Shown here in pieces: positions 2 to 11,153 of a DNA stretch of 23,666 nt. The stretch is taken from sequence record NC_074632.1; one strand, 5' to 3'. Position numbers and translations under genes: made by a program. How positions within the stretch are numbered: position 1 is the first letter of the stretch; each line of letters opens with the position of its first letter. The notes under the pieces were generated by a model that searched no databases, was not told the DNA's origin, and saw nothing but the letters and a program-made list of their open reading frames with translations.

Positions 2-212
2 ACTTTTTTTCATGATAAATGAAATATTTTGAATTACAAAATTACAATAAATCTCAGATTGTTGAGAAGTACTAATTAAGGGAGTAATATAGGAATATAT
101 AATATATAGCGAACGGTAGGAATTTAACGACGTTGAGAAAAATTCAAGACGTTAATTTTTCCTACCATTCGGCACCGAACTATCTGAGATATATAAATCT
201 TCATGAAAAAGT
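2..212. repeat. Nested imperfect inverted repeats at the left genome end
   Basis: TTTTTCATGA 6-15 / TCATGAAAAA 201-210; ATCTCAGAT 51-59 / ATCTGAGAT 182-190; GAACGGTAGGAA 111-122 / TTCCTACCATTC 159-170 (11/12); TTAACG 124-129 / CGTTAA 150-155. Confidence 0.6.
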
Positions 213-838: not shown

Positions 839-868
839 ATGAATATTCCTAATATGCAGCATATGGAT
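839..868. promoter_or_regulatory. 30-bp pseudo-palindromic operator-like motif, degenerate copy
   Basis: ATGAATATTCCTAATATGCAGCATATGGAT; direct repeat of 935-964. Confidence 0.5.
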
Positions 869-905
869 ATTGGTATTGTTTTTGATAGGTGGCAGTCACA
901 TAGTA

Positions 906-931
906 ACTTCGTTCGGAACTACGTTCCTCAC
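906..931. repeat. Hairpin element copy 1
   Basis: ACTTCGTTC-GGAAC-TAC-GTTCC-TCAC. Confidence 0.9.
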
Positions 932-934
932 AGT

Positions 935-964
935 ATGAATATTCCTAATATTAATCATATGGAT
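935..964. promoter_or_regulatory. 30-bp pseudo-palindromic operator-like motif
   Basis: ATGAATATTCCTAATATTAATCATATGGAT; about 25/30 to consensus ACTCATATWCCTWATATTAATAATATGAAT. Confidence 0.6.
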
Positions 965-984
965 TGTGTAAGGGGGTTTGTTAT

Positions 985-1012
985 TGAAATCAAGATAGAA
1001 AGATTTAAATAG
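985..1012 (+). promoter_or_regulatory. Early promoter (purine-rich BRE + TATA)
   Basis: TGAAATCAAGATAGAAAGATTTAAATAG, just upstream of ORF 1039. Confidence 0.8.
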
Positions 1013-1038
1013 TGGTAATGAGAGATATATAATGAGAG

Positions 1039-2172: not shown

Positions 2173-2478
2173 ATGAGTAAAAATGAATTGGAAATGTTAA
2201 ACGAAATAAATAACAAAATGGATGAGATAAACAAAAAATTAGATATAATTCTTCAGAAATTAGGATTTTCAAACGTGGATTTTGACAAGGTGTTTGAGGA
2301 AGTTAAAAATCCTATGGATATTGCAGTTTTGAAAGACATAAGGGAGAGAATGGGTTTACCAAAGGAAGAATTTTACTCTAAATATTCTTCTTACATTGAG
2401 TCACATTTCCAAATGTATAGGGGCGGAGACGAAGGAATAGTTAAGCATGGAGCGATTTTCGGAATAATAAAAAGGTAG
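2173..2478 (+). CDS. Early protein with N-terminal coiled coil and probable winged-helix-like C-terminal domain
   Basis: Heptad N-terminus (LNEINNKMDEINKKLDII). C-terminal LKDIRERMGLPKEEF...GGDEG...FGIIKR resembles small proteins of Sulfolobales viruses and plasmids (recalled, not searched). Confidence 0.7.
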   Translation: MSKNELEMLNEINNKMDEINKKLDIILQKLGFSNVDFDKVFEEVKNPMDIAVLKDIRERMGLPKEEFYSKYSSYIESHFQMYRGGDEGIVKHGAIFGIIKR

Positions 2479-2499
2479 CATTTTTAATTTCATTTTATA

Positions 2500-2551: not shown

Positions 2552-3022
2552 CTATTTTTGATTTTCATCTTTTTTCTTCTTTTTGAACATGTATTCTATC
2601 ACTTTTTTTATTGTTTTATCGTCAAAATTTAATATCTCAAAATGTAAATAGTATGATTTTCTAAATTTTTTCTGTACTTCTTTGTAATCAATTCGTTGAT
2701 TTGTTGCAATTAAGCGGTGATAATGCAATTTATGTTTTTCTCCTTTTTCAGCAATTGAGAATATTTCGGCATTGTAATTTTTATGCAAATATTCTCTTGG
2801 TGGTAGATATATTTCGTCAGTATTTTCTGTGCTTATTTCGATTTTTTTTGTTGTTTCGTTCGGAGCTTCGCTCCTCACTTTAGGTTTTATTGTTTCTGTC
2901 ATAAAATAGAGATATTTATAATTTTCAGCTTTGCTAAGAAATTCTTTTAATTTTTTTGCAGTTGACGTTGAAATATTGTATTTCAGTAAAATCTCTGCGA
3001 TAATGATTTCTTGATTTAGCAT
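2552..3022 (-). CDS. rep: HUH-superfamily replication initiator (rudiviral Rep, SIRV1 ORF119-like)
   Basis: Motif I-like YFMT, HUH motif II LHYHRLI, motif III EYMFK (YxxK); sits near the RHH and SSB genes as in SIRVs. Confidence 0.8.
   Translation of the reverse strand: MLNQEIIIAEILLKYNISTSTAKKLKEFLSKAENYKYLYFMTETIKPKVRSEAPNETTKKIEISTENTDEIYLPPREYLHKNYNAEIFSIAEKGEKHKLHYHRLIATNQRIDYKEVQKKFRKSYYLHFEILNFDDKTIKKVIEYMFKKKKKDENQK
2853..2878. repeat. Hairpin element copy 2 (inside rep)
   Basis: GTTTCGTTC-GGAGC-TTC-GCTCC-TCAC. Confidence 0.9.
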
Positions 3023-3085
3023 GAGAAAAACAAGGAAGTTTACATAAAAAAATGTTATGACTTAATGGTTTTGTTTGTGGTTATG

Positions 3086-3241
3086 TCATTCGTTTTCAGG
3101 CAGTTTGTTTACAAAATCTCTAATTAAATCGTTTATTGTGATATCATTGTCTATGCAATATTTTTTCAATTTTTTGTGTTGCTGTTTTGTTAATCTTATC
3201 GTTATCAATATCTTTTTTTCTTCTTGGTTTTCTGTTTCCAT
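3086..3241 (-). CDS. 51-aa RHH regulator, SvtR-like (below the ORF-track cutoff)
   Basis: Manual translation METENQEEKKILITIRLTKQQHKKLKKYCIDNDITINDLIRDFVNKLPENE; SD GGTGA upstream; KLKKYCIDNDITINDLI resembles the helices of SIRV1 SvtR. Confidence 0.8.
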   Translation of the reverse strand: METENQEEKKILITIRLTKQQHKKLKKYCIDNDITINDLIRDFVNKLPENE

Positions 3242-3365
3242 TTTTTCACCAGTTTATGTATTATCTGTTTACATTTTTAAGAAATTTTGATTTCGATATT
3301 ACGCTATTTCAAGGTTGCAACATATAAAAATGTTGACATCCTATATTAAAAATAGGAGATATAAA

Positions 3366-3659
3366 ATGGAGCATATGTTAAAAACAATTTCAAAACCCGT
3401 TTCAATACGGGTAAGTAAAACTCAATATCAGTTTTTTTTAATGCGTAGACAAGAATTGAAAAGGAAATTACTAAAAAAGGTGATGGATATGGAAAATATA
3501 AAAATAGAAAATAAACCAGACCAAGATAAAGAGATTTACAGAGATACAATATCTTTCAGGTTACCTTATCAATATTACCAAAAGCTTGCTGAAATTGCTG
3601 AAGAAAATCAAGTTAAAGTAAGTGACATTATAAGAAATATTTTATTTGGAGGCGAGTAA
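3366..3659 (+). CDS. Tandem (double) RHH DNA-binding protein
   Basis: Two RHH-like units: PVSIRVSKTQYQFF and TISFRLPYQYYQKLAEIAEENQVKVSDIIRNIL. SD AGGAG favours ATG 3366 over the track start of 3315. Confidence 0.75.
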   Translation: MEHMLKTISKPVSIRVSKTQYQFFLMRRQELKRKLLKKVMDMENIKIENKPDQDKEIYRDTISFRLPYQYYQKLAEIAEENQVKVSDIIRNILFGGE

Positions 3660-3660
3660 G

Positions 3661-4053
3661 ATGGCGAGTTTACAAGAAATATTTAACGAACTGAAAGAGA
3701 AAGTTAAGGAAAGCGGTAAGCCGGCAAACAGAGTACTAAAAATTAAAGGTCTGAAAAGGCTAGTAATTCAATTAAATGCTGTCCCAGATGGAGATTCTGT
3801 AAGATTCAGTATGACAATTCATAGTTCTAGAAATTTCAAAAAACAGTTAGGAATTGTCGCTGACGATGCACAAGATTTCGAAACAATAGCAAATTTTCTA
3901 ACGAAATATAAAGATTATCTAAGCAAATATATCAAATTTAATATACAAGATAGGAGTAATGTCGAAGATATAGAAGATACTGAAGAAACAGAAAAACAAC
4001 AGCCAAAACAAAATAAATCAAAAAAAGAAAGAAATGTTGAAGATGAATTCTAA
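3661..4053 (+). CDS. Single-stranded DNA-binding protein (SIRV2 gp17 / ORF131-like)
   Basis: MASLQEIF...RVLKIKGLKRLVIQLNAVP...SMTIHS...KQLGI and acidic tail ending VEDEF match the recalled rudiviral SSB. Confidence 0.9.
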   Translation: MASLQEIFNELKEKVKESGKPANRVLKIKGLKRLVIQLNAVPDGDSVRFSMTIHSSRNFKKQLGIVADDAQDFETIANFLTKYKDYLSKYIKFNIQDRSNVEDIEDTEETEKQQPKQNKSKKERNVEDEF

Positions 4054-4068
4054 CGCTAGTGATAAAAA

Positions 4069-4323
4069 ATGGTAGTTGATTTGAAGAGAATACAAAAAAT
4101 AATAGAAGATCAGTTTATTTCATACACGGCGCCAAGGATTGATATCATACTGTTTCCTACCGACGAGACTAGCGGTCTTTTTTATGCAGTTTATATCGTT
4201 GAATTTACGGATATTCAATATTTTACATCGCAGAAAATAGCAGAGGGCAAATATATGGTATTTCCAGAACAGAATGTTCTTATTATTAAGATCGGAGATT
4301 CTGCAAAAATTGTAAAGTTATAA
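4069..4323 (+). CDS. Hypothetical protein (84 aa)
   Basis: ATG ORF co-directional with the SSB gene and followed by a terminator. Confidence 0.7.
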   Translation: MVVDLKRIQKIIEDQFISYTAPRIDIILFPTDETSGLFYAVYIVEFTDIQYFTSQKIAEGKYMVFPEQNVLIIKIGDSAKIVKL

Positions 4324-4330
4324 TTTTTTA

Positions 4331-4374
4331 TTTTTTTATCAATAATTTTTCTCACGTTTGCCATAATATTACTA
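4331..4374 (+). terminator. 44-bp T-rich terminator module, copy 2
   Basis: 40/44 identical to 2500-2543. Confidence 0.6.
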
Positions 4375-4388
4375 TTTGCCTATTTAAC

Positions 4389-4414
4389 ACTACGTTCGGA
4401 GCTTCGCTCCTCAC
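4389..4414. repeat. Hairpin element copy 3
   Basis: ACTACGTTC-GGAGC-TTC-GCTCC-TCAC. Confidence 0.9.
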
Positions 4415-4426
4415 TCAATTTTCAAT

Positions 4427-4456
4427 ACAAATATTCCTTATATTATTTATATGTAT
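4427..4456. promoter_or_regulatory. 30-bp operator-like motif upstream of the ATPase gene
   Basis: ACAAATATTCCTTATATTATTTATATGTAT, about 25/30 to consensus. Confidence 0.55.
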
Positions 4457-4517
4457 ATTTTCATTCAATTTTACGTGAAAGAGAAGCTTAAAATATGTTG
4501 ACTCCAACGATTTACGT

Positions 4518-5828
4518 ATGGCATATCCAGAAGAATTCAAAAAAGTTTTTGAAGAAAACTCATTTTTTTTCAATCCTAGAGATGAAAATAGAATTTTGTA
4601 TTATATTTTTAAAAATCCAAATGTTCCTGATGAAAAGAAAACTAACGCATTGAAGGCTTGGAAACTAGGCAACGATAACCAATATTTTGAAATGTACAAA
4701 GCGTTTTCTAATGAAATAAAATTTATATCTAAAATTGTAAAATTTAAAGAAAAAGATGGAGAGATTCTTGCTTATTTTCAAAATGGATTTGTTTCACGCT
4801 TTGATCCAAAAATGTTAGCGGACAACCCAGACGATGCCTACAATTTGCTTCAGTCATATCTTTTAATTAAAATCAAAAAATCTACTGACAGTTGGGAAAT
4901 TTGCGATATCATGCCAGTTGAACCCGCAAAAAATGTAGATATTGCAAAGCAATTGCTCCAATTTGCTGAGGCTGAACATACAACATATTCAGTTTTGCTT
5001 TATGCGTTTGGATATGATGTTGAAAAAATGAATGCTGACGATATTTTGGTTACAGTTCCTAGGTTTTTCCCACTTTTTGTTTCGCCATATTCAAAAAGGC
5101 GTTATAACGTTATTGAAATTTCAAACCCTGGCACCGGCAAGACATCAATTTTTACAATATTACAAGAAGTTTTTAATTTTAGATATTATACGGAACCGCC
5201 AACATATGCAAATTTGGTATACGATGCGAGAAATAATATATATGGTGCAGTGTATCTGTCAAAAGGTCTTATTTTCGATGAAATTCAAACTTGGAAAAAT
5301 AGTACAAATCAGAAAAATATGGAAGCAGTAAATTCTACGTTGTCAACTGGGATGGAAAACTGCATTTGGACAAGGGGAGCAGGGACAGAAAGCAAATCTG
5401 CCGTTCTCCACAGCTGTCTTCCAATTGTCTACGCAGGAAATCCATACACTGCCGTGTTAGACAAATATTCTGCAATGAATGTTGAAGATTATTTGCAACA
5501 ATATGAAATATTTACTCCTGCAATATTGGATAGAATTCATTTAATTCACATTTCGTTGAAAAAAACTTATGATCAGATTGGGAGTAAAAGGGTGCTTTAT
5601 CCTTCAGTTTTAAAGGCTCTTGTAGATTTATTACAAGAAAAACTAAATCAACAAAATCATTTTGTAGATTGTCAAAATTTCACATCAAGAAGGCATGAAC
5701 AATCGGTCGATATACAGTTATTGCTAAGGACGTTAGATTTACAAAATGATGAAATTGAAAAGAATCAAGATGAATTTTGTGCAAAACTTCAAGACTATAT
5801 GAGATTTATAAAACTGATGGGTGATTGA
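4518..5828 (+). CDS. AAA+ ATPase (SIRV2 gp18 / ORF436-like; Lon/MCM-clade ATPase domain)
   Basis: Walker A SNPGTGKTS, Walker B LIFDE, sensor AGNP, arginine-finger-like AILDRI; 436 aa; precedes the Cas4-like nuclease. Confidence 0.9.
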   Translation: MAYPEEFKKVFEENSFFFNPRDENRILYYIFKNPNVPDEKKTNALKAWKLGNDNQYFEMYKAFSNEIKFISKIVKFKEKDGEILAYFQNGFVSRFDPKMLADNPDDAYNLLQSYLLIKIKKSTDSWEICDIMPVEPAKNVDIAKQLLQFAEAEHTTYSVLLYAFGYDVEKMNADDILVTVPRFFPLFVSPYSKRRYNVIEISNPGTGKTSIFTILQEVFNFRYYTEPPTYANLVYDARNNIYGAVYLSKGLIFDEIQTWKNSTNQKNMEAVNSTLSTGMENCIWTRGAGTESKSAVLHSCLPIVYAGNPYTAVLDKYSAMNVEDYLQQYEIFTPAILDRIHLIHISLKKTYDQIGSKRVLYPSVLKALVDLLQEKLNQQNHFVDCQNFTSRRHEQSVDIQLLLRTLDLQNDEIEKNQDEFCAKLQDYMRFIKLMGD

Positions 5829-6457
5829 AAATGGTTTATGAGAATAAAATAAAAGAAAGCTTCAAGAAAATTTATCCAGAAGATACACTTTATCCGTCCG
5901 AAATTGGGCATTGCCTGCGAAAAACAATTTTGGCGAGAAGGATTGTCCATACAAAAAATCTTTCAAATGATTTCATGGATCTTGGCGTAATTATTCATGC
6001 TGACATTGAAAATTACCTAACGCAACAATTAGGTTGCGATGCAGAGAAAGCAATTGAATATCAAATAGAAGGTGTAAAAATATCTGCAAGAATAGATTTA
6101 CTTTGTCATGGCGACCTACTTGAATTGAAAACAGTTTCGCATTTTATTCGTCAACCTTATCAAAATCATATTGTTCAAGTATCTCTTTATTTACATATTT
6201 TATCACAGTTAGGATATAATGTTAATAATGTTTACATTATTTACGTAAATAGACAAAATTATGATGTACAAGAGTTTAAAATTCAAAAAGAACAACTAGA
6301 TGCTGGTTTAAAGCAAGCAATTAAATTTATAGAAGATTATAAGAAATACAAAAATGAGCAAAATATATTTAAAATTCCATTTGCGGATTTAGTTTTTTGC
6401 AAAACTTGCGAATTTAATAATATTTGCTATGGATCGATAACTAATTTTTTAAAATGA
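5825..6457 (+). CDS. Cas4-like (RecB-family, 4Fe-4S) nuclease (SIRV2 gp19-like)
   Basis: N-terminal YPSEIGHCLRK, RIDLL...LLELKT, QVSLY, C-terminal CKTCEFNNIC (1+3 Cys). Start is TTG 5825 or ATG 5831. Confidence 0.9.
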   Translation: MKMVYENKIKESFKKIYPEDTLYPSEIGHCLRKTILARRIVHTKNLSNDFMDLGVIIHADIENYLTQQLGCDAEKAIEYQIEGVKISARIDLLCHGDLLELKTVSHFIRQPYQNHIVQVSLYLHILSQLGYNVNNVYIIYVNRQNYDVQEFKIQKEQLDAGLKQAIKFIEDYKKYKNEQNIFKIPFADLVFCKTCEFNNICYGSITNFLK

Positions 6458-6549
6458 TTCGCCTTATCTGTGTTATTTTTATTGTATGACTCTCTGGTTC
6501 ACTCCGGGGGTTATATACTTTTAAATTATATATTATTAAGAATTATAAT

Positions 6550-6879
6550 ATGGAGAATAAATTCGCTGATTGGAATAAATATAGAAGGCAAGTTAATCAA
6601 GTTATTTTGGAATATTTCAACGAAACTGGTGTGCCGTTAGCGTTGAGATCTTTATATTTTTCATTTGGGCAAAAAATATTGTCAATTGTAAAAAGACAAA
6701 AAGATAAAAATATTATAGATAAATTAGTTGAGGCAAATATTTGCTATTTTTCAAAAGGTTTTGACGCAAATGAAAGAGTATTAAGAGATATTGTAAAAAT
6801 TATATTTTTAATGAAAATTGAGAATAAAAAACCAGATGAAGTTTTGAAAGAGATTTTTACGGATAAAGCTAACCACTAA
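6550..6879 (+). CDS. Probable truncated paralogue of the major capsid protein
   Basis: 16/59 ungapped identities to MCP residues 67-125 of this genome. Confidence 0.7.
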   Translation: MENKFADWNKYRRQVNQVILEYFNETGVPLALRSLYFSFGQKILSIVKRQKDKNIIDKLVEANICYFSKGFDANERVLRDIVKIIFLMKIENKKPDEVLKEIFTDKANH

Positions 6880-6980
6880 TATACCTTATATTAATAATAT
6901 GAATATTGTGTAATTTTGATGTTTTGTTGTAAACATGCATATACATAATATTAGGTATATGCAATTTTCGTATTCAATTT
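6875..6980 (+). promoter_or_regulatory. 106-bp late regulatory module upstream of MCP
   Basis: 30-mer 6875-6904, near-perfect palindrome GCATATACATAATATTAGGTATATGC 6937-6962, CGTATTCAATTT 6969-6980; colinear with 13211-13316. Confidence 0.75.
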
Positions 6981-7017
6981 TTATAAGCTTTTAAAAATAA
7001 TAATAAATTGACGAGAA

Positions 7018-7422
7018 ATGGCGAAAGGTCATACACCAAGGAGTTATTCCCAAAGGTATGCAAAATGGTCAGGGAAATTCACTGCATTTTCAAATCCAAC
7101 GGTAGCATCAACTATACTAACTAACGTTGATGAAGTTGCAAAAGAAAATTTCCAAACTAATGTGCCAAAATTTGCATCAGTTAATGATCAAGTTAGCGCA
7201 GTACTCACTCAGTATGGCGTAACTGGACCTAGCAGAGCGATATATCAAGGCTTCGGGTTAAAAATTGCTAGAGCCTTAAACAGAATTGGATCTGGACCTG
7301 CGTTAACCAATATGATTGCCGGTCTAAAAGCTTATTACATTTCAGCATTCAATGCAAATCCTACAATTTTAGACGCTGTAACTAATATAATTACTGGAAG
7401 TCCTAACGGGTACGTTAGCTAA
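7018..7422 (+). CDS. Rudivirus major capsid protein (SIRV P134 / gp26)
   Basis: MAKGHTPRSYSQRYAKW...RAIYQGFGLKIARALNRIGSGPAL...SAFNANP...GYVS is nearly identical to the recalled SIRV2 MCP. Confidence 0.97.
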   Translation: MAKGHTPRSYSQRYAKWSGKFTAFSNPTVASTILTNVDEVAKENFQTNVPKFASVNDQVSAVLTQYGVTGPSRAIYQGFGLKIARALNRIGSGPALTNMIAGLKAYYISAFNANPTILDAVTNIITGSPNGYVS

Positions 7423-7526
7423 CCTTAAAAGCTAATATATTGTTTTTTTATTTTTCTATTTTGCGTTTTAGTCCAATCTATATCTGAAAATTTTGTTTTA
7501 AAAATGTAAACATGAATAACTAAACC

Positions 7527-7751
7527 ATGATTGAAGAATATTTAAGACAAAAGGGCTTTGAGCCCCATTATATTTCAATTTTGAAAGAATTTCTGATTGA
7601 AATAAAAGAAGCATTAGATGAGAACGTTAGTAATTACGATTTAGACGAAATTATAAATTCTATCATCGAATATTTTGCAATAACATATAAATTACAAAAA
7701 ACAGATCTTTACCAACTTGTGAACGATGCGATACAAGACGGTGTTGTATGA
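7527..7751 (+). CDS. Acidic 74-aa protein, possible second truncated MCP-fold paralogue
   Basis: 15/68 ungapped identities to MCP 59-126 with conserved hydrophobic pattern. Confidence 0.6.
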   Translation: MIEEYLRQKGFEPHYISILKEFLIEIKEALDENVSNYDLDEIINSIIEYFAITYKLQKTDLYQLVNDAIQDGVV

Positions 7752-8771
7752 ATGGCAAAAACGCTTATCTTAACTATGGGCTATGCGTCTGTTAAGAATG
7801 TCGCTGAAGACATCGCAACAGTCGTGGGCAATGCAACTGTTGATGTTGAGCCTGCGTTGTATTTACAAAATATAAATAAATTTGATAAACTTATTGTTTT
7901 TGTTCCGTTTGTCCCCTCACTTTTAAACAATTATCTGTTGGTTTATAATAATTTTCAAGGCGAGAAATATTTCTACACAACCGCAGACGGCGTACCGTTG
8001 TTGAATGGCGTAAATGAATATATTGCAAGAAATATAAAATATATACCAAATTCTCAGTTTTCTGCAGAAAATCTAAAATCTGCCAATCTTGATGTGGATA
8101 TTCCAGTTTTTCATGGCGTAAACTTCGACATAGTGAAGAAGGCAGAAGAATTAGTTCCAAAAATGAGAGAAAAACTTGACCATGATTTTCCAGATAGTGT
8201 GAAAATCGGTATTGTTTCAGGTATGACGAGACGCAAAAACATCGATTTGTTTGTCGAAACAACCAGATTTCTGAACGAAAAAATGTCAGATATTGCGAAA
8301 AATATACATTTCTTTGTAATTTCGCATAAAGATTTTCAGAAATTGGACGTACCACAAAACGTTCATTTTGTTGCGCAATTTGGATATCAAAGTAGAGAAA
8401 AAGTATTTGCGTTTTACGGTGCGATGGACTATGTATTTGTTCCATCGGGATGTGAAGGATTTGGATTGCCAGTTCTAGAGGCGATGGCGATGGGCACTCC
8501 TGTAATTCACATGGCTATACCGCCATTCACTGAATTTACATCGTGGCAGTGGAATTTTCTGTTTAAAGATGAGGATGTGGAAAGATATTACGATAAGGAC
8601 CATGGTCAAACATGGAAAATCCATCGATTCACACCGGAAACTGGCGCACTAGCGATTTCGACGGCAGTGATGTCGGTTGATAGGGAGGAAAGAAGCAGGA
8701 GACTGAGAGATTTAGCTAAAAAATATGATATTAGGTTTTTATACAAGAGATTTTTAGAGAGTTTCGAATAG
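7752..8771 (+). CDS. GT-B (GT4-like) glycosyltransferase
   Basis: PSGCEGFGLPVLEAMAMGTPVI (Ex7E motif). Confidence 0.92.
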   Translation: MAKTLILTMGYASVKNVAEDIATVVGNATVDVEPALYLQNINKFDKLIVFVPFVPSLLNNYLLVYNNFQGEKYFYTTADGVPLLNGVNEYIARNIKYIPNSQFSAENLKSANLDVDIPVFHGVNFDIVKKAEELVPKMREKLDHDFPDSVKIGIVSGMTRRKNIDLFVETTRFLNEKMSDIAKNIHFFVISHKDFQKLDVPQNVHFVAQFGYQSREKVFAFYGAMDYVFVPSGCEGFGLPVLEAMAMGTPVIHMAIPPFTEFTSWQWNFLFKDEDVERYYDKDHGQTWKIHRFTPETGALAISTAVMSVDREERSRRLRDLAKKYDIRFLYKRFLESFE

Positions 8772-9698
8772 GGCATAGACCGTGCATGGACCTGTCGCCC
8801 ATGCGTAAATGTTAGATGGATTGTTAACTGAAAATTCCAAACTATCATTTGGCAAAATTGGAAAATTATTGTAAAGTTTGTTTCCAATATATACAATATA
8901 ATTAGAAAGATTTTGTAATATGATTTTTACAGTTTCTAGCGATGGACCTGAATAAATTGGTGACGGTGTTGTTGAAATTTGCAGTTGAAGACCTTGTATT
9001 GCAGGTGGGCTCATGTACATTGTCAATTTATTGATTGCGCTTGACAGTGAGTTCATGGATAAATAAATATACGCAAGTGCGTAAAGTAGGGCGTCAGTAA
9101 TCGTATAGATTGCCCCAGATAGCCCTGCCGATATCTGATTTGTTAATCTTGCAGTGACTAAATACACATTATTGTAAATATTTTGCAAAATTTCTGGCAC
9201 ATACAAAGTTGGCGATATTGCGGTTTTTATCTGATTGTCAACGCCAATTATAACCTGGTAAAGATTCTGGTAAACATTGTTTATTTCGCTTTGTAATGCA
9301 TTTTGTGTTTGTGTAACTGTTCCTGCGGTCAATTTGGCAATTGCGTTATAGACGTCAGATGGCATTTGAACAACTGCATTATACAATTGTGTTTGGCTGT
9401 TTACAATTGCTTGAATTTGTTGCGAAGCAGTTGCAATAAATCCTGCAATATAGATAGGATCTTGCTCTGTTATAACGGGCTGACCTGATACGTAAACTTC
9501 ATTGTAAAAATCTCCAACTTGTGCAGTAATATTGTTTGGAACGTAAAGATTACCGTTTTGAAATAATTGCCTGTCAATAAGTGTCCCAGCAAAATATATC
9601 TGGTTCAGTTTCAAAATTGCGGTATTCCACATCGCCGATGTCAATCTCTGAAACGGCTGTACGAATAAATCTGCAAAATTGGTATATTGAATACTCAT
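8754..9698 (-). CDS. Conserved rudiviral protein (SIRV ORF309-like), probably structural
   Basis: 314 aa, Q/N-rich helical middle, beta-rich C-terminus, N-terminal LTSAMWNTAILKL motif shared with fibre-like proteins. Confidence 0.65.
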   Translation of the reverse strand: MSIQYTNFADLFVQPFQRLTSAMWNTAILKLNQIYFAGTLIDRQLFQNGNLYVPNNITAQVGDFYNEVYVSGQPVITEQDPIYIAGFIATASQQIQAIVNSQTQLYNAVVQMPSDVYNAIAKLTAGTVTQTQNALQSEINNVYQNLYQVIIGVDNQIKTAISPTLYVPEILQNIYNNVYLVTARLTNQISAGLSGAIYTITDALLYALAYIYLSMNSLSSAINKLTMYMSPPAIQGLQLQISTTPSPIYSGPSLETVKIILQNLSNYIVYIGNKLYNNFPILPNDSLEFSVNNPSNIYAWATGPCTVYALFETL

Positions 9699-9736
9699 AA
9701 TTAAAAATGTTGTGTAATAGACTTATAAATGTCATC

Positions 9737-9786
9737 GTGATGCGCAAAGCGCAGAACGTAGTGAGGTGCGTAGCACCGAACGTAGT
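9737..9786. repeat. Hairpin element copies 4 and 5 in tandem (reverse orientation, 24-bp period)
   Basis: Reverse complement reads ACTACGTTC-GGTGC-TAC-GCACC-TC|ACTACGTTC-TGCGC-TTT-GCGCA-TCAC. Confidence 0.9.
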
Positions 9787-9873
9787 GCTAGTTAGGTCTT
9801 TTAAATTTCAGTGGAAATATATTTATTATGGTGAGACATTACGAGTTTTGATAATATTTTTGGACCGGTCAGA

Positions 9874-10191
9874 TTGATAATCGATAAATTGAAAGAATTG
9901 GAAATGAGGGGTGAGGCTTACGGTTTTTCCCAATATTTGTCACAGGCAATAATTTTATTCAGGACGACAGACAATGGCGCAATATACCAAATATTCATTC
10001 CTAATTTTAGTTATTATTTTGAATTTCTTGTTGAAAAAGATCCAAAAACAAAAGCGCCTATGGTTTCAGATTATAGAATTATTTATCCTGCGCCTGTGAA
10101 GATTTCAGATAGTCAAATTATGAAAGAATTAATACAAGATTATCTTCAATTTCAAGCGATGCAGATGCAGGGTAGCGGTCAAAATGAGTGA
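9874..10191 (+). CDS. Hypothetical protein
   Basis: 105-aa ORF (TTG start, or the internal ATG of MRGEAY); stop overlaps the next start. Confidence 0.7.
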   Translation: MIIDKLKELEMRGEAYGFSQYLSQAIILFRTTDNGAIYQIFIPNFSYYFEFLVEKDPKTKAPMVSDYRIIYPAPVKISDSQIMKELIQDYLQFQAMQMQGSGQNE

Positions 10192-10432
10192 AGCCACTCT
10201 TGTTCTTACAACACTTTCTACAACTGTGACTGTGTTATTGTCAATTATTACACTTTACTATAAGATAAAAACAATGTTTCGCAATGCAGTAAAGGATATT
10301 GTAAAACAAGAATTAGACAATTTGGTCAAAGAGATTTCAAAAATAAAGCAAAAACAAGACAAACAAGAAAACGATATTGAATATCTAAAACAAGAAATTG
10401 AAGAAATAAAAAAGAAAGTTGAAAAATTATAG
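10184..10432 (+). CDS. Small membrane protein: N-terminal TM helix plus coiled coil
   Basis: Hydrophobic residues 5-26 followed by K/E/Q heptads. Confidence 0.75.
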   Translation: MSEATLVLTTLSTTVTVLLSIITLYYKIKTMFRNAVKDIVKQELDNLVKEISKIKQKQDKQENDIEYLKQEIEEIKKKVEKL

Positions 10433-10639
10433 TTGTCTGTTGCTTTTTTCTCTTAATTCTTTCAATATTTTTATTACTTCTTGTGCTTTTTTGTATAAAT
10501 CTGACTTTCTAATATTTTCATCATCTACGGTTGCAAGTTCCATAGCCAAGTTGTCAAGCGCAACAAACAATTTTGCTGAAAATTCTTTATCTTGTTTTAT
10601 CTTTGGTTTTATTTCTTCTATTGTTTCTTTTTCACTCAT
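10427..10639 (-). CDS. Hypothetical helical protein (70 aa)
   Basis: ATG start coupled to the GNAT stop, SD AGGTGA, K/E-rich composition. Confidence 0.7.
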   Translation of the reverse strand: MSEKETIEEIKPKIKQDKEFSAKLFVALDNLAMELATVDDENIRKSDLYKKAQEVIKILKELREKSNRQL

Positions 10640-11153
10640 CTTTTTTCACCTCGTTTTTCGTTTTTTTGTCTTTTTCGTTTACTTCGTTCGGCACTACGTG
10701 CCTCACATTTAAATATTTTACAAAAACTGGCGTATTTGTTCTAGGCGTGTCTCCGACATATTCAAATCCTGAATTTTTATATAATGCATTTGAATGATTT
10801 GGAAAACCTAAAGTCCACAGCACTTCAATTTCATATGATTTCAGTAAATCAGATAATTTTTCAAGAAATTCTACAAGGTAATCGCCTGGGGCAGTTTTCG
10901 TAACCCTTCTAATAAAATACGATCTGTCAATTGGAATTTTGAATTTTTCTGCAACAAATCTGAATGGAATTGAATCGTTGATCCACGCAATTGCAACGAT
11001 GTAATTATCGCATTGATATGTAAAATATTTCTGGATTTTTGACGCTCCACCGCCTTGCGTTATGCCTTGAGCATGATATTTTGCAATTAGCAATCGTGAT
11101 AATTCAATATCTTTCTTATCCTGAAGTTCAACTATTTTGCATTCTTCCGCCAT
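10632..11153 (-). CDS. GNAT-family acetyltransferase
   Basis: FIRRVTK...YLVEFLEKL...EVLWTLG...NHSNALYKNSGFEYVG matches GNAT motifs A and B. Confidence 0.7.
   Translation of the reverse strand: MAEECKIVELQDKKDIELSRLLIAKYHAQGITQGGGASKIQKYFTYQCDNYIVAIAWINDSIPFRFVAEKFKIPIDRSYFIRRVTKTAPGDYLVEFLEKLSDLLKSYEIEVLWTLGFPNHSNALYKNSGFEYVGDTPRTNTPVFVKYLNVRHVVPNEVNEKDKKTKNEVKKDE
10681..10706. repeat. Hairpin element copy 6 (inside the GNAT 3-prime end)
   Basis: ACTTCGTTC-GGCAC-TAC-GTGCC-TCAC. Confidence 0.9.

Follow-up and report, generated by a model that had tools for sequence, protein, structure and literature searches.

The window analysed here (23,666 bases, sequence record NC_074632.1) spans the entire genome of Acidianus rod-shaped virus 3 (ARV3; MN876842.1, 100% identity), a member of the Rudiviridae (Hoswirudivirus) that originates from Pozzuoli, Italy, and has Acidianus brierleyi as its host. 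We describe a 24-bp hairpin unit that occurs six times in this genome, including one copy within a gene for a replication protein (Rep) homologue and one within an acetyltransferase gene. The comparison set comprised the genomes of ARV1, ARV2, SSRV1 and MRV1. SSRV1, MRV1 and ARV2 are the nearest relatives of ARV3 in the collection, with ~77-80% nucleotide identity over the alignable parts, and ARV1 is more remote. The paper describing ARV3 makes no mention of hairpins, palindromes or insertions/deletions (indels). The units and the two open reading frames (ORFs) that host translated copies are as follows, in window coordinates.

908..931 (-): unit 1, GTGA-GGAAC-GTA-GTTCC-GAACG-AA; antisense within annotated ORF01
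2855..2878 (-): unit 2, GTGA-GGAGC-GAA-GCTCC-GAACG-AA; codes for V49-E56 of the Rep homologue
4391..4414 (-): unit 3, same 22-mer as unit 2; in the intergenic spacer of gp10 and gp11
9737..9760 (+): unit 4, GTGA-TGCGC-AAA-GCGCA-GAACG-TA; first of a tandem pair
9761..9784 (+): unit 5, GTGA-GGTGC-GTA-GCACC-GAACG-TA; second of the tandem pair
10683..10706 (-): unit 6, GTGA-GGCAC-GTA-GTGCC-GAACG-AA; codes for V150-E157 of the acetyltransferase
2552..3022 (-): ORF06-156, HUH Rep homologue of SIRV1 ORF119; hosts unit 2
10632..11153 (-): ORF21-173, labelled putative acetyltransferase in the record; hosts unit 6

Each 24-bp unit is built from GTGA, a 5-bp stem, a triloop that is mostly GNA, the complementary stem, GAACG and two variable bases. 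An exact pattern scan for GTGA-N13-GAACG returned exactly six copies in the window, with the 22-mers at 910-931(-), 2857-2878(-), 4393-4414(-), 9737-9758(+), 9761-9782(+) and 10685-10706(-), against 1.2e-4 copies expected from base composition; 20 shuffles of the sequence gave no match, relaxed criteria included. In each of the six, the inner 13 bases fold without a mismatch into a 5-bp stem and a 3-nt loop (loops GTA, GAA, GAA, AAA, GTA and GTA in units 1 to 6). ARV3 has a GC content of 32%, and five of its six GC-rich hairpins with a 5-bp stem and 3-nt loop belong to the GTGA/GAACG motif.

Folded as single strands, the six ARV3 units and two from MRV1 all gave the same plain stem of 5 bp with a 3-nt loop. 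The ARV3 stems vary between copies by double, compensatory changes. Across ten aligned rudiviral units every stem cell (50/50) is Watson-Crick paired, with zero G-T pairs; four of the five pairs show changes on both sides, and none shows a change on one side only. The nine flank bases, GTGA and GAACG, are identical at non-homologous sites and across different viruses. By inspection of the single-stranded form, these flanks could lengthen the helix via G1-C21, U/T2-A20 and the tandem sheared pairs G3.A19 and A4.G18. The C-GNA-G triloop is a classic type of very stable DNA mini-hairpin (d(GCGAAGC), Hirao and co-workers).

Unit 2 lies in ORF06-156, which carries only a hypothetical label in the record and which matches the SIRV1 ORF119 Rep (PDB 2x3g, E 1.8e-6) and Pfam PF21578. 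A preliminary description of this DNA, made from the letters alone, had read this copy as a peptide inside Rep, between motif I and the HUH motif. The unit indeed begins with the GTG codon of V49 (2878-2876) on the sense strand and encodes VRSEAPNE (V49-E56). In an AlphaFold model of the ARV3 Rep (mean pLDDT 73, with only five sequences in the alignment), a strand is formed by residues 37-45, pLDDT falls below 50 at residues 50-69, and H100-Y-H102 lies on the strand 99-107, all of which is consistent with the placement claimed. In this model, unit 2 is situated where a probably disordered linker begins, which connects the first strand with the HUH strand. The Rep proteins of ARV1, ARV2, SSRV1 and MRV1 have nine residues fewer at the hairpin and one extra residue 14 positions further on, and compared with ARV2 or MRV1 the ARV3 protein has a net gain of eight codons, or 24 bp (156 vs 148 aa). 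The Lys-rich linker around the insert is too divergent for a base-exact boundary, and no further Rep alleles could be compared because a collection of 5.8 billion proteins holds only four homologous sequences.

Unit 6 is likewise translated on the sense strand, starting at the GTG codon of V150 (10706-10704) and giving VRHVVPNE (V150-E157). A Pfam search gave no match for this ORF. The unit had been placed after the GNAT core, and we find it past the last conserved residue, where it opens a Lys/Glu-rich C-terminal tail. Aligned with ARV3, the ARV2, SSRV1 and MRV1 orthologues run without a gap as far as ...KYLNV and resume at (S/N)EK..., with exactly eight residues absent. At the DNA level, ARV3 reads TTTAAAT-[GTGAGGCACGTAGTGCCGAACGAA]-GTAAACGAAAAA where ARV2 reads TTTAAAT-GTAAGCGAAAAA, an exact difference of 24 bp. 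The suggestion that such insertions are tolerated in protein loops agrees with both settings, the low-confidence linker of Rep and the charged tail of the acetyltransferase.

Other rudiviruses carry filled sites of their own. A scan of the relatives located a tandem pair of units within gp19 of MRV1 (9375-9420(-)), where the protein reads PDFPE-VRHEVPND-VSGEATNG-DQNLN, in the same frame as the ARV3 coding units; at this site the proteins of ARV3, ARV2, SSRV1 and ARV1 are shorter by exactly 16 residues (48 bp). The C-terminus of SSRV1 gp04 holds a degenerate unit (~1003-1026 (-)), ATGG-GTGGC-AAA-GCCAC-GGATG-AA, translated as MGGKATDE; compared with ARV2, exactly 24 bp are inserted, the stem is that of the MRV1 unit at 9375, and the flanks have decayed. 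In a metagenome scan, the rudivirus contig L217 (Ga0080003_1008541) was found to encode a methyltransferase with 20 additional residues (60 bp) following DCEGC. The additional DNA comprises a 36-bp unit (GTGA-GGCC, a 17-nt loop, GGCC-GAACG-AA), 12 bp longer than the standard unit, followed by a canonical 24-bp unit. The reading frames of Rep, the acetyltransferase, MRV1 gp19, SSRV1 gp04 and the L217 methyltransferase all remain open despite their inserts.

The hairpin-free orthologues are shorter, and not equal in length as substitution would leave them: by exactly 24 bp for the acetyltransferases of ARV2, SSRV1 and MRV1, and by a net 24 bp for Rep. With close relatives as the reference, these alignments show the units to be truly inserted, in steps of 24 bp; at least four rudiviruses carry them, at sites that are not homologous. 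The idea that the motif arose by chance or by convergent substitution, without any insertion, has only the small size of the motif in its favour; it is hardly credible beside the excess of copies over expectation and the exact 24-, 48- and 24-bp differences at three cleanly alignable sites, and is refuted by the empty sites.

The two translated ARV3 copies had been said to share frame and strand. This stands for units 2 and 6, both sense and both starting on a GTG codon, and fails as a property of the element, for the L217 insert is read in the other open sense frame (xGT GAG), as ...AERSEARSAERS.... One sense-strand frame of the unit contains TGA and two are open, and both open frames are in use; the common frame of the coding units is best called a tendency, not a rule. 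Genic units survive as 8-codon inserts because of the TGA in one sense frame and because lengths that are not multiples of three break the frame. In each of the five independent coding insertions the unit is in sense orientation (p 0.01-0.03 with simple priors). This bias could come from selection, from a link to transcription or from a link to the replication strand, and the three sources are inseparable because six of the seven rudiviral sites with known genome orientation are on the minus strand, in the left half of the genome.

The state of the frames also bears on whether the unit might be removed from RNA, as a mini-intron or a self-cleaving motif, which would make the frame irrelevant. 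We consider this very improbable. UGA and GAA around a G-C-closed helix do resemble the stem II side of a hammerhead core (by sequence inspection only), and the motif is found in all domains of life. However, the coding copies all keep the frame and avoid the one with TGA, which would be needless if they were spliced; the unit departs from the hammerhead at essential positions, with GUGA, not CUGANGA, and GAAC, not GAAA, on a single helix with no helices I or III; its 5-bp stem and 3-nt loop cannot form a bulge-helix-bulge; and no Rfam ribozyme matches even at E up to 10. No Rfam family of any kind overlaps the motif, either at the gathering score (window and ten loci) or at E up to 10 (eight loci). 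Among known structures considered by inspection, the hammerhead, K-turn/K-loop, sarcin-ricin loop, SECIS element and bulge-helix-bulge each fail a defining position; a bulge-helix-bulge intron has two 3-nt bulges and a 4-bp helix, and the eight folded units are plain stem-loops.

The remaining ARV3 copies are intergenic or, in the case of unit 1, antisense in a doubtful ORF. Units 4 and 5 lie within an ARV3-specific insertion of ~95-100 bp (9701..9800, +) in the divergent spacer of gp17 and gp18, with the start codon of gp17 on one side and the conserved TTTAAATTT box of gp18 on the other; this insertion is missing in ARV2, SSRV1 and MRV1. Unit 5 lies ~20 nt upstream of that box, which is TATA-like. 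Unit 3 is in a stretch of the gp10-gp11 spacer that cannot be aligned with the relatives. Unit 1 sits antisense in ORF01 (839-1012 +), which is built from a pair of imperfect direct repeats of 96 bp (window 839-1034; 839-887 and 935-983 are 76% identical), and it is found where the first repeat ends. ORF01 may not be a real gene, a doubt that arises because it has no homologue in ARV1, ARV2, SSRV1 or MRV1. Two features of the gp18 region were seen in passing. The gp18 start codon kept in ARV2, SSRV1 and MRV1 (ATGAGTCTTGAC...) reads ACG in ARV3 (window 9846-9910), and the ARV3 record has a shorter gp18 from 9904 because the usual start codon is ACG. The upstream ORF at 9707-9877 crosses units 4 and 5 and is in a different frame.

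The tandem pair at 9737-9784 consists of abutting units with a 24-bp period, as first described. The further claim that an AC dinucleotide (GT on the motif strand) bounds the repeating unit is borne out in part: GT follows the unit at five of eight independent junctions (p ~1e-5), and the other three are without it. The GT could be a 2-bp duplication or reflect a preference for insertion before GT; such a preference would account for the tandem pile-ups, as each unit itself starts with GT. Some units are identical over 22 bases at unrelated sites. The 22-mers of units 2 and 3 (ARV3 2857 and 4393) are the same, and that at MRV1 9399 equals that at L217 1043, in different genes of different viruses.

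The preliminary description had also proposed a relation to the 12-bp indel mechanism of rudiviruses, with a unit of 2x12 bp. Indels of 12 bp were reportedly described by Peng et al. in 2004 and by Vestergaard et al. in 2008; the published cases are not known to have a conserved sequence, and two decades have brought neither a signature nor a mechanism. We aligned all ARV3 proteins with their best counterparts in ARV2, SSRV1 and MRV1 and collected the internal indels (n=35), which are distributed by length as follows.

1, 2, 4, 5, 6 and 7 residues: 7, 5, 7, 1, 1 and 2 indels, respectively
8, 9, 12, 16, 36 and 54 residues: 6, 1, 1, 2, 1 and 1 indels, respectively

Multiples of four residues (12n bp), at 4, 8, 12, 16 and 36 codons, make up 17 of the 35. 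Hairpin units account for three of the eight indels of 8 and 16 residues (acetyltransferase, SSRV1 gp04 and MRV1 gp19), and the 9-residue gap in Rep is a fourth indel with a unit. The remaining 12n-bp indels (DKKT, MQMQ, DYIT and others) have unrelated sequences and no hairpin; one of them is close to unit 6.

10659..10670 (-): classic DKKT indel of 12 bp, near the C-terminus of the acetyltransferase; carried by ARV3 and SSRV1, not by ARV2 or MRV1; no hairpin

A link to the 12-bp indels is thus consistent with the length census; no internal 2x12 substructure was demonstrated in the unit. On the sequence evidence, the hairpin units are a sequence-defined subset of the 12-bp indel phenomenon and not the whole of it. 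Like the 12-bp indels of rudiviruses and lipothrixviruses, they are frame-preserving presence/absence differences of 12n bp, mostly inside ORFs, and the hairpin inserts of 24, 48, 24 and 60 bp are all multiples of 12 bp. Unlike the published indels, they have nine invariant flank bases, a covarying hairpin, recurrence at unrelated sites and occurrence outside the Ligamenvirales.

The strongest competing explanation denies that the units are discrete mobile elements and sees them as by-products of a general 12-bp indel process of the Ligamenvirales, acting for example by template switching or slippage in strand-displacement replication; hairpin-forming 24-mers would be fixed by accident and perfected by intrastrand template switching (quasipalindrome correction). 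We find this somewhat unlikely. Frame-preserving 12-bp indels have been reported for both rudiviruses and lipothrixviruses (PMC4390879), the census points the same way, and the L217 insert is 60 bp long, with one unit that has a 17-nt loop and exceeds the standard unit by 12 bp. The stem changes are all Watson-Crick, without wobble intermediates, as templated correction predicts; such perfect yet differing stems fit arm-to-arm templating at the DNA level at least as well as they fit selection on an RNA fold. On the other hand, the other 12n-bp indels lack hairpins and are unrelated in sequence, local slippage cannot yield nine identical flank bases and identical 22-mers at unrelated sites, and the motif is present in unrelated organisms as well. 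In AFV1, one capsid dimer repeat spans 12 bp of A-form DNA (PMC5517147); that this repeat causes the equal indel quantum is speculation.

We think it reasonably probable that the six copies are members of one family of insertion modules, very small and GC-rich hairpins similar to repetitive extragenic palindromes (REP) and miniature inverted-repeat transposable elements (MITEs), which spread as folded single-stranded DNA (ssDNA). In its behaviour the unit would rank among the smallest known insertion elements, and its patchy distribution among rudiviruses counts for this interpretation. Rudiviruses replicate by strand displacement, with abundant ssDNA. As REP/MITE-like elements, the units would be non-autonomous and either selfish or neutral, copied as folded ssDNA during strand-displacement replication by a trans-acting factor; this factor might be the viral HUH Rep, a Y1/HUH nuclease of the host or simply the replication machinery. 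Either arm-to-arm templating or selection on the fold would keep their copy-specific stems perfect, and a single process might lie behind both the hairpin units and the 12-bp-quantum indels of rudiviruses and lipothrixviruses. Rep is an obvious candidate because strand displacement is rich in ssDNA and ARV3 encodes this HUH nicking-joining enzyme, yet ARV2 and SSRV1 encode Rep too and are without an intact unit.

Several observations weigh against a mobile insertion module. The two intergenic sites (unit 3, and units 4 and 5) are not clean 24-bp insertions. No conserved target sequence was found, the upstream flanks differ at all eight sites, and the 2-bp GT is the only candidate for a duplication. 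Stems vary between copies, which simple copy-and-paste does not predict. The copy number is low, and among the 33 annotated ARV3 ORFs there is no transposase-like gene, the only HUH protein being the Rep homologue. No copy was present in ~60 kb of non-redundant Sulfolobales chromosome (reached via transcription factor B neighbourhoods), a sample that does not include the real hosts and is too small to argue against a host origin. Finally, in DPANN archaea (below), an invariant stem upstream of TATA-like boxes looks more like a functional than a selfish site.

Among known systems, REP elements and the related REPINs, mobilised by RAYT (a Y1 HUH enzyme), come close: they too are short GC-rich hairpins with a conserved unpaired head, dispersed, clustered or in tandem, non-autonomous and thought to move as folded ssDNA. 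REPs differ in being extragenic, present in hundreds, headed by GTAG or GTGG and flanking RAYT genes, whereas the ARV3 units have a GTGA head and six copies, some of them intragenic. Two of the six are translated and one of the six is in an annotated ORF, no RAYT is found among the annotated ARV3 ORFs, and GTAG precedes the motif only in the tandem copies and in some bacterial copies. The missing RAYT, the low copy number and the intragenic copies set the units apart from the REP family as defined, and the differing head probably does so too. Rickettsia palindromic elements (Ogata et al. 2000) are likewise palindromic selfish DNA, inserted in-frame in genes and translated as surface or loop peptides; they measure 100-150 bp and are confined to Rickettsia, as opposed to 24 bp in an archaeal virus. 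The small dispersed repeats of cyanobacteria, reportedly described by Elhai et al. in 2008 as very small mobile repeated elements, are apparently mobile and would resemble the units in size (21-27 nt), in that some are hairpins, in having no obvious transposase or target duplication and in being sometimes nested or in tandem; sequences and hosts differ.

MITEs and palindrome-associated transposable elements (PATEs, derived from IS200/IS605) share with the units their non-autonomy, a structure-bearing sequence and presence/absence polymorphism, and differ in length, which runs from tens to hundreds of bp, in having either terminal inverted repeats or a pair of distinct subterminal hairpins, and in using a specific target of 4-5 nt. 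The unit is no MITE as defined (~50-500 bp, terminal inverted repeats, target duplication), being 24 bp long with a 5-bp stem as its sole inverted repeat and at most the 2-bp GT as a duplication. Nor is it a PATE, with a fixed 4-5-nt target and left and right hairpins, since the upstream flanks differ at 8/8 sites and each unit has a single hairpin. Compared with a CRISPR mini-array, the tandem units abut without a spacer. CRISPR repeats of the Sulfolobales are AT-rich and end in GAAAG.

Among viruses, no copy of the motif was found in ARV1 or ARV2, in 17 IMG/VR rudivirus contigs fetched via the capsid protein (197 kb), or in 130 kb from ASV1, ATV2 (first 50 kb), AFV2 and ABV. When nine concatenated units were compared by BLAST with GenBank phage and archaeal-virus records, ARV3 and MRV1 gave the only archaeal-virus matches; the others were bacteriophages, mainly Mycobacterium abscessus prophages (E ~2), plus two at E = 8. 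Plasmid matches were marginal (E 0.05-8), and the two inspected (Lactiplantibacillus and Bacillus thuringiensis) were rejected as hairpin units. The match in the M. abscessus prophage records (~54 kb; e.g. MW314854.1:423-465) is weak (E ~2) and lies in an unannotated stretch. An IMG/VR pattern scan returned 90 loci, approximately the number expected by chance, with no rudivirus among them. Three of these loci (L013, L015 and L028, on contigs of ~54-64 kb) contain a perfect copy, GTGAGGTACGAAGTACCGAACG, within GAGTGA...GAACGACGA; from contig size only, we infer that they are related to the M. abscessus prophages. With the loop left free, the scan gave GNA loops in 8 of 14 perfect-stem matches, against 6 of 59 imperfect ones.

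One IMG/VR phage contig (L040, IMGVR_UViG_3300025897_000953) has the motif three times at two sites (60-200 and 1860-1910), in-frame as VRAYGPN and VRAEGSN inside open frames of 335 and 441 codons. An ORF-frame census of the motif in GC-rich genomes carried no information, as long spurious ORFs are common there. The same contig shows a second in-frame hairpin, ATTGCC-GNA-GGCAAT (IAEGN), before the GTGA...GAACG motif and repeated at two places, and a ATTGCCGAAGGCAAT hairpin also adjoins the motif in a Treponema locus (L109).

Prokaryotic genomes, one per species, were scanned for GTGAGG-NN-CGNAG-NN-CCGAACG, giving at least 120 loci (examples: L100:1083-1104; L152:5855-5876 and 6430-6451). Of the 123 distinct matches listed, 95 have complementary bases at both free stem pairs, where 6% would be expected, with 12 stem variants, and the taxa include DPANN archaea, haloarchaea, Kiritimatiellaeota, Treponema, Prevotella and gammaproteobacteria. 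The surroundings differ between groups. A single Kiritimatiellaeota metagenome-assembled genome has the motif at the apex of a palindromic repeat unit of ~80 nt on at least 15 contigs, Treponema and Prevotella have it within multi-hairpin mosaics, and in gammaproteobacteria it was intergenic in both loci inspected. In DPANN archaea (Woese-, Pace- and Nanoarchaeota; e.g. L104, L119, L127 and L152) the stem is always GGCGC-GAA-GCGCC, often with two copies per 8 kb. By inspection, it follows an A-rich 'AATAGCCACAAT' stretch and is often 15-20 nt upstream of a TATA-like box (TTAAATA), with ATG ~45 nt downstream; this arrangement suggests a promoter-proximal site, or else a promoter cassette that is mobile.

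This DPANN version, together with the similar spacing of units 4 and 5 ~20 nt from the gp18 box, raises the prospect that the hairpin is a recruited functional cis-element (for ssDNA priming or protein loading on displaced strands, as a protein-binding site near promoters or as an RNA stem-loop), with the coding copies as tolerated side effects. The strict conservation of flanks and fold, the known stability of C-GNA-G triloops in DNA and the sense orientation of all five independent coding insertions (p ~0.01-0.03) speak in its favour. We nevertheless judge it quite unlikely, as the closest relatives, with the same genes and lifestyle, have no copy (ARV2) or a decayed one (SSRV1), unit positions differ between ARV3, MRV1 and L217, two copies are antisense to local genes, and Rfam offers no matching family.

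Returning to insertion modules spread as ssDNA, a much broader claim would make GTGA-hairpin-GAACG an ultra-small class of mobile DNA (22-24 bp) that crosses domains, spreads by a universal ssDNA route (HUH nuclease or hairpin-directed template switching) and is the agent of part of the 12-bp indels; in this full form we regard it as unlikely. Frame-preserving 12n-bp indels were known before; what is new, as far as literature and collections were searched, is a recurrent 24-bp hairpin unit defined by sequence, and a motif that crosses domains. A subset of the 12-bp indels now has a defined sequence and fold, recurrence at unrelated sites and clean empty sites, and so offers a concrete experimental substrate. 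The units also illustrate a cost-free way in which viral proteins can acquire peptides of eight residues, and they draw attention to an uncurated hairpin motif common to several domains of life.

Further features were recorded beside the units. The IMG/VR rudivirus contigs L233 (5721-5742), L237 (421-442) and L241 (3177-3198) carry a palindrome, GTGACGAAC-TAT-GTTCGGCAC, whose arms equal the fused flanks of the ARV3 motif with the hairpin left out (GTGA+CGAAC). Short ARV3 segments at window 2204-2483 and 1811-1956 are 90% identical to Acidianus two-tailed virus 2 (the ATV2 above) and 85% identical to Acidianus spindle-shaped virus 1 (ASV1), respectively, which indicates gene exchange between unrelated virus families with common hosts. 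The left terminal region of ARV3 contains a long inverted repeat at window 108-180 (GAACGGTAGGAATTTAACG ... CGTTAATTTTTCCTACCATTC), followed by TTCGGCACCGAAC; the TAGGAATTT core in this region may resemble the nick region of the SIRV1 Rep.

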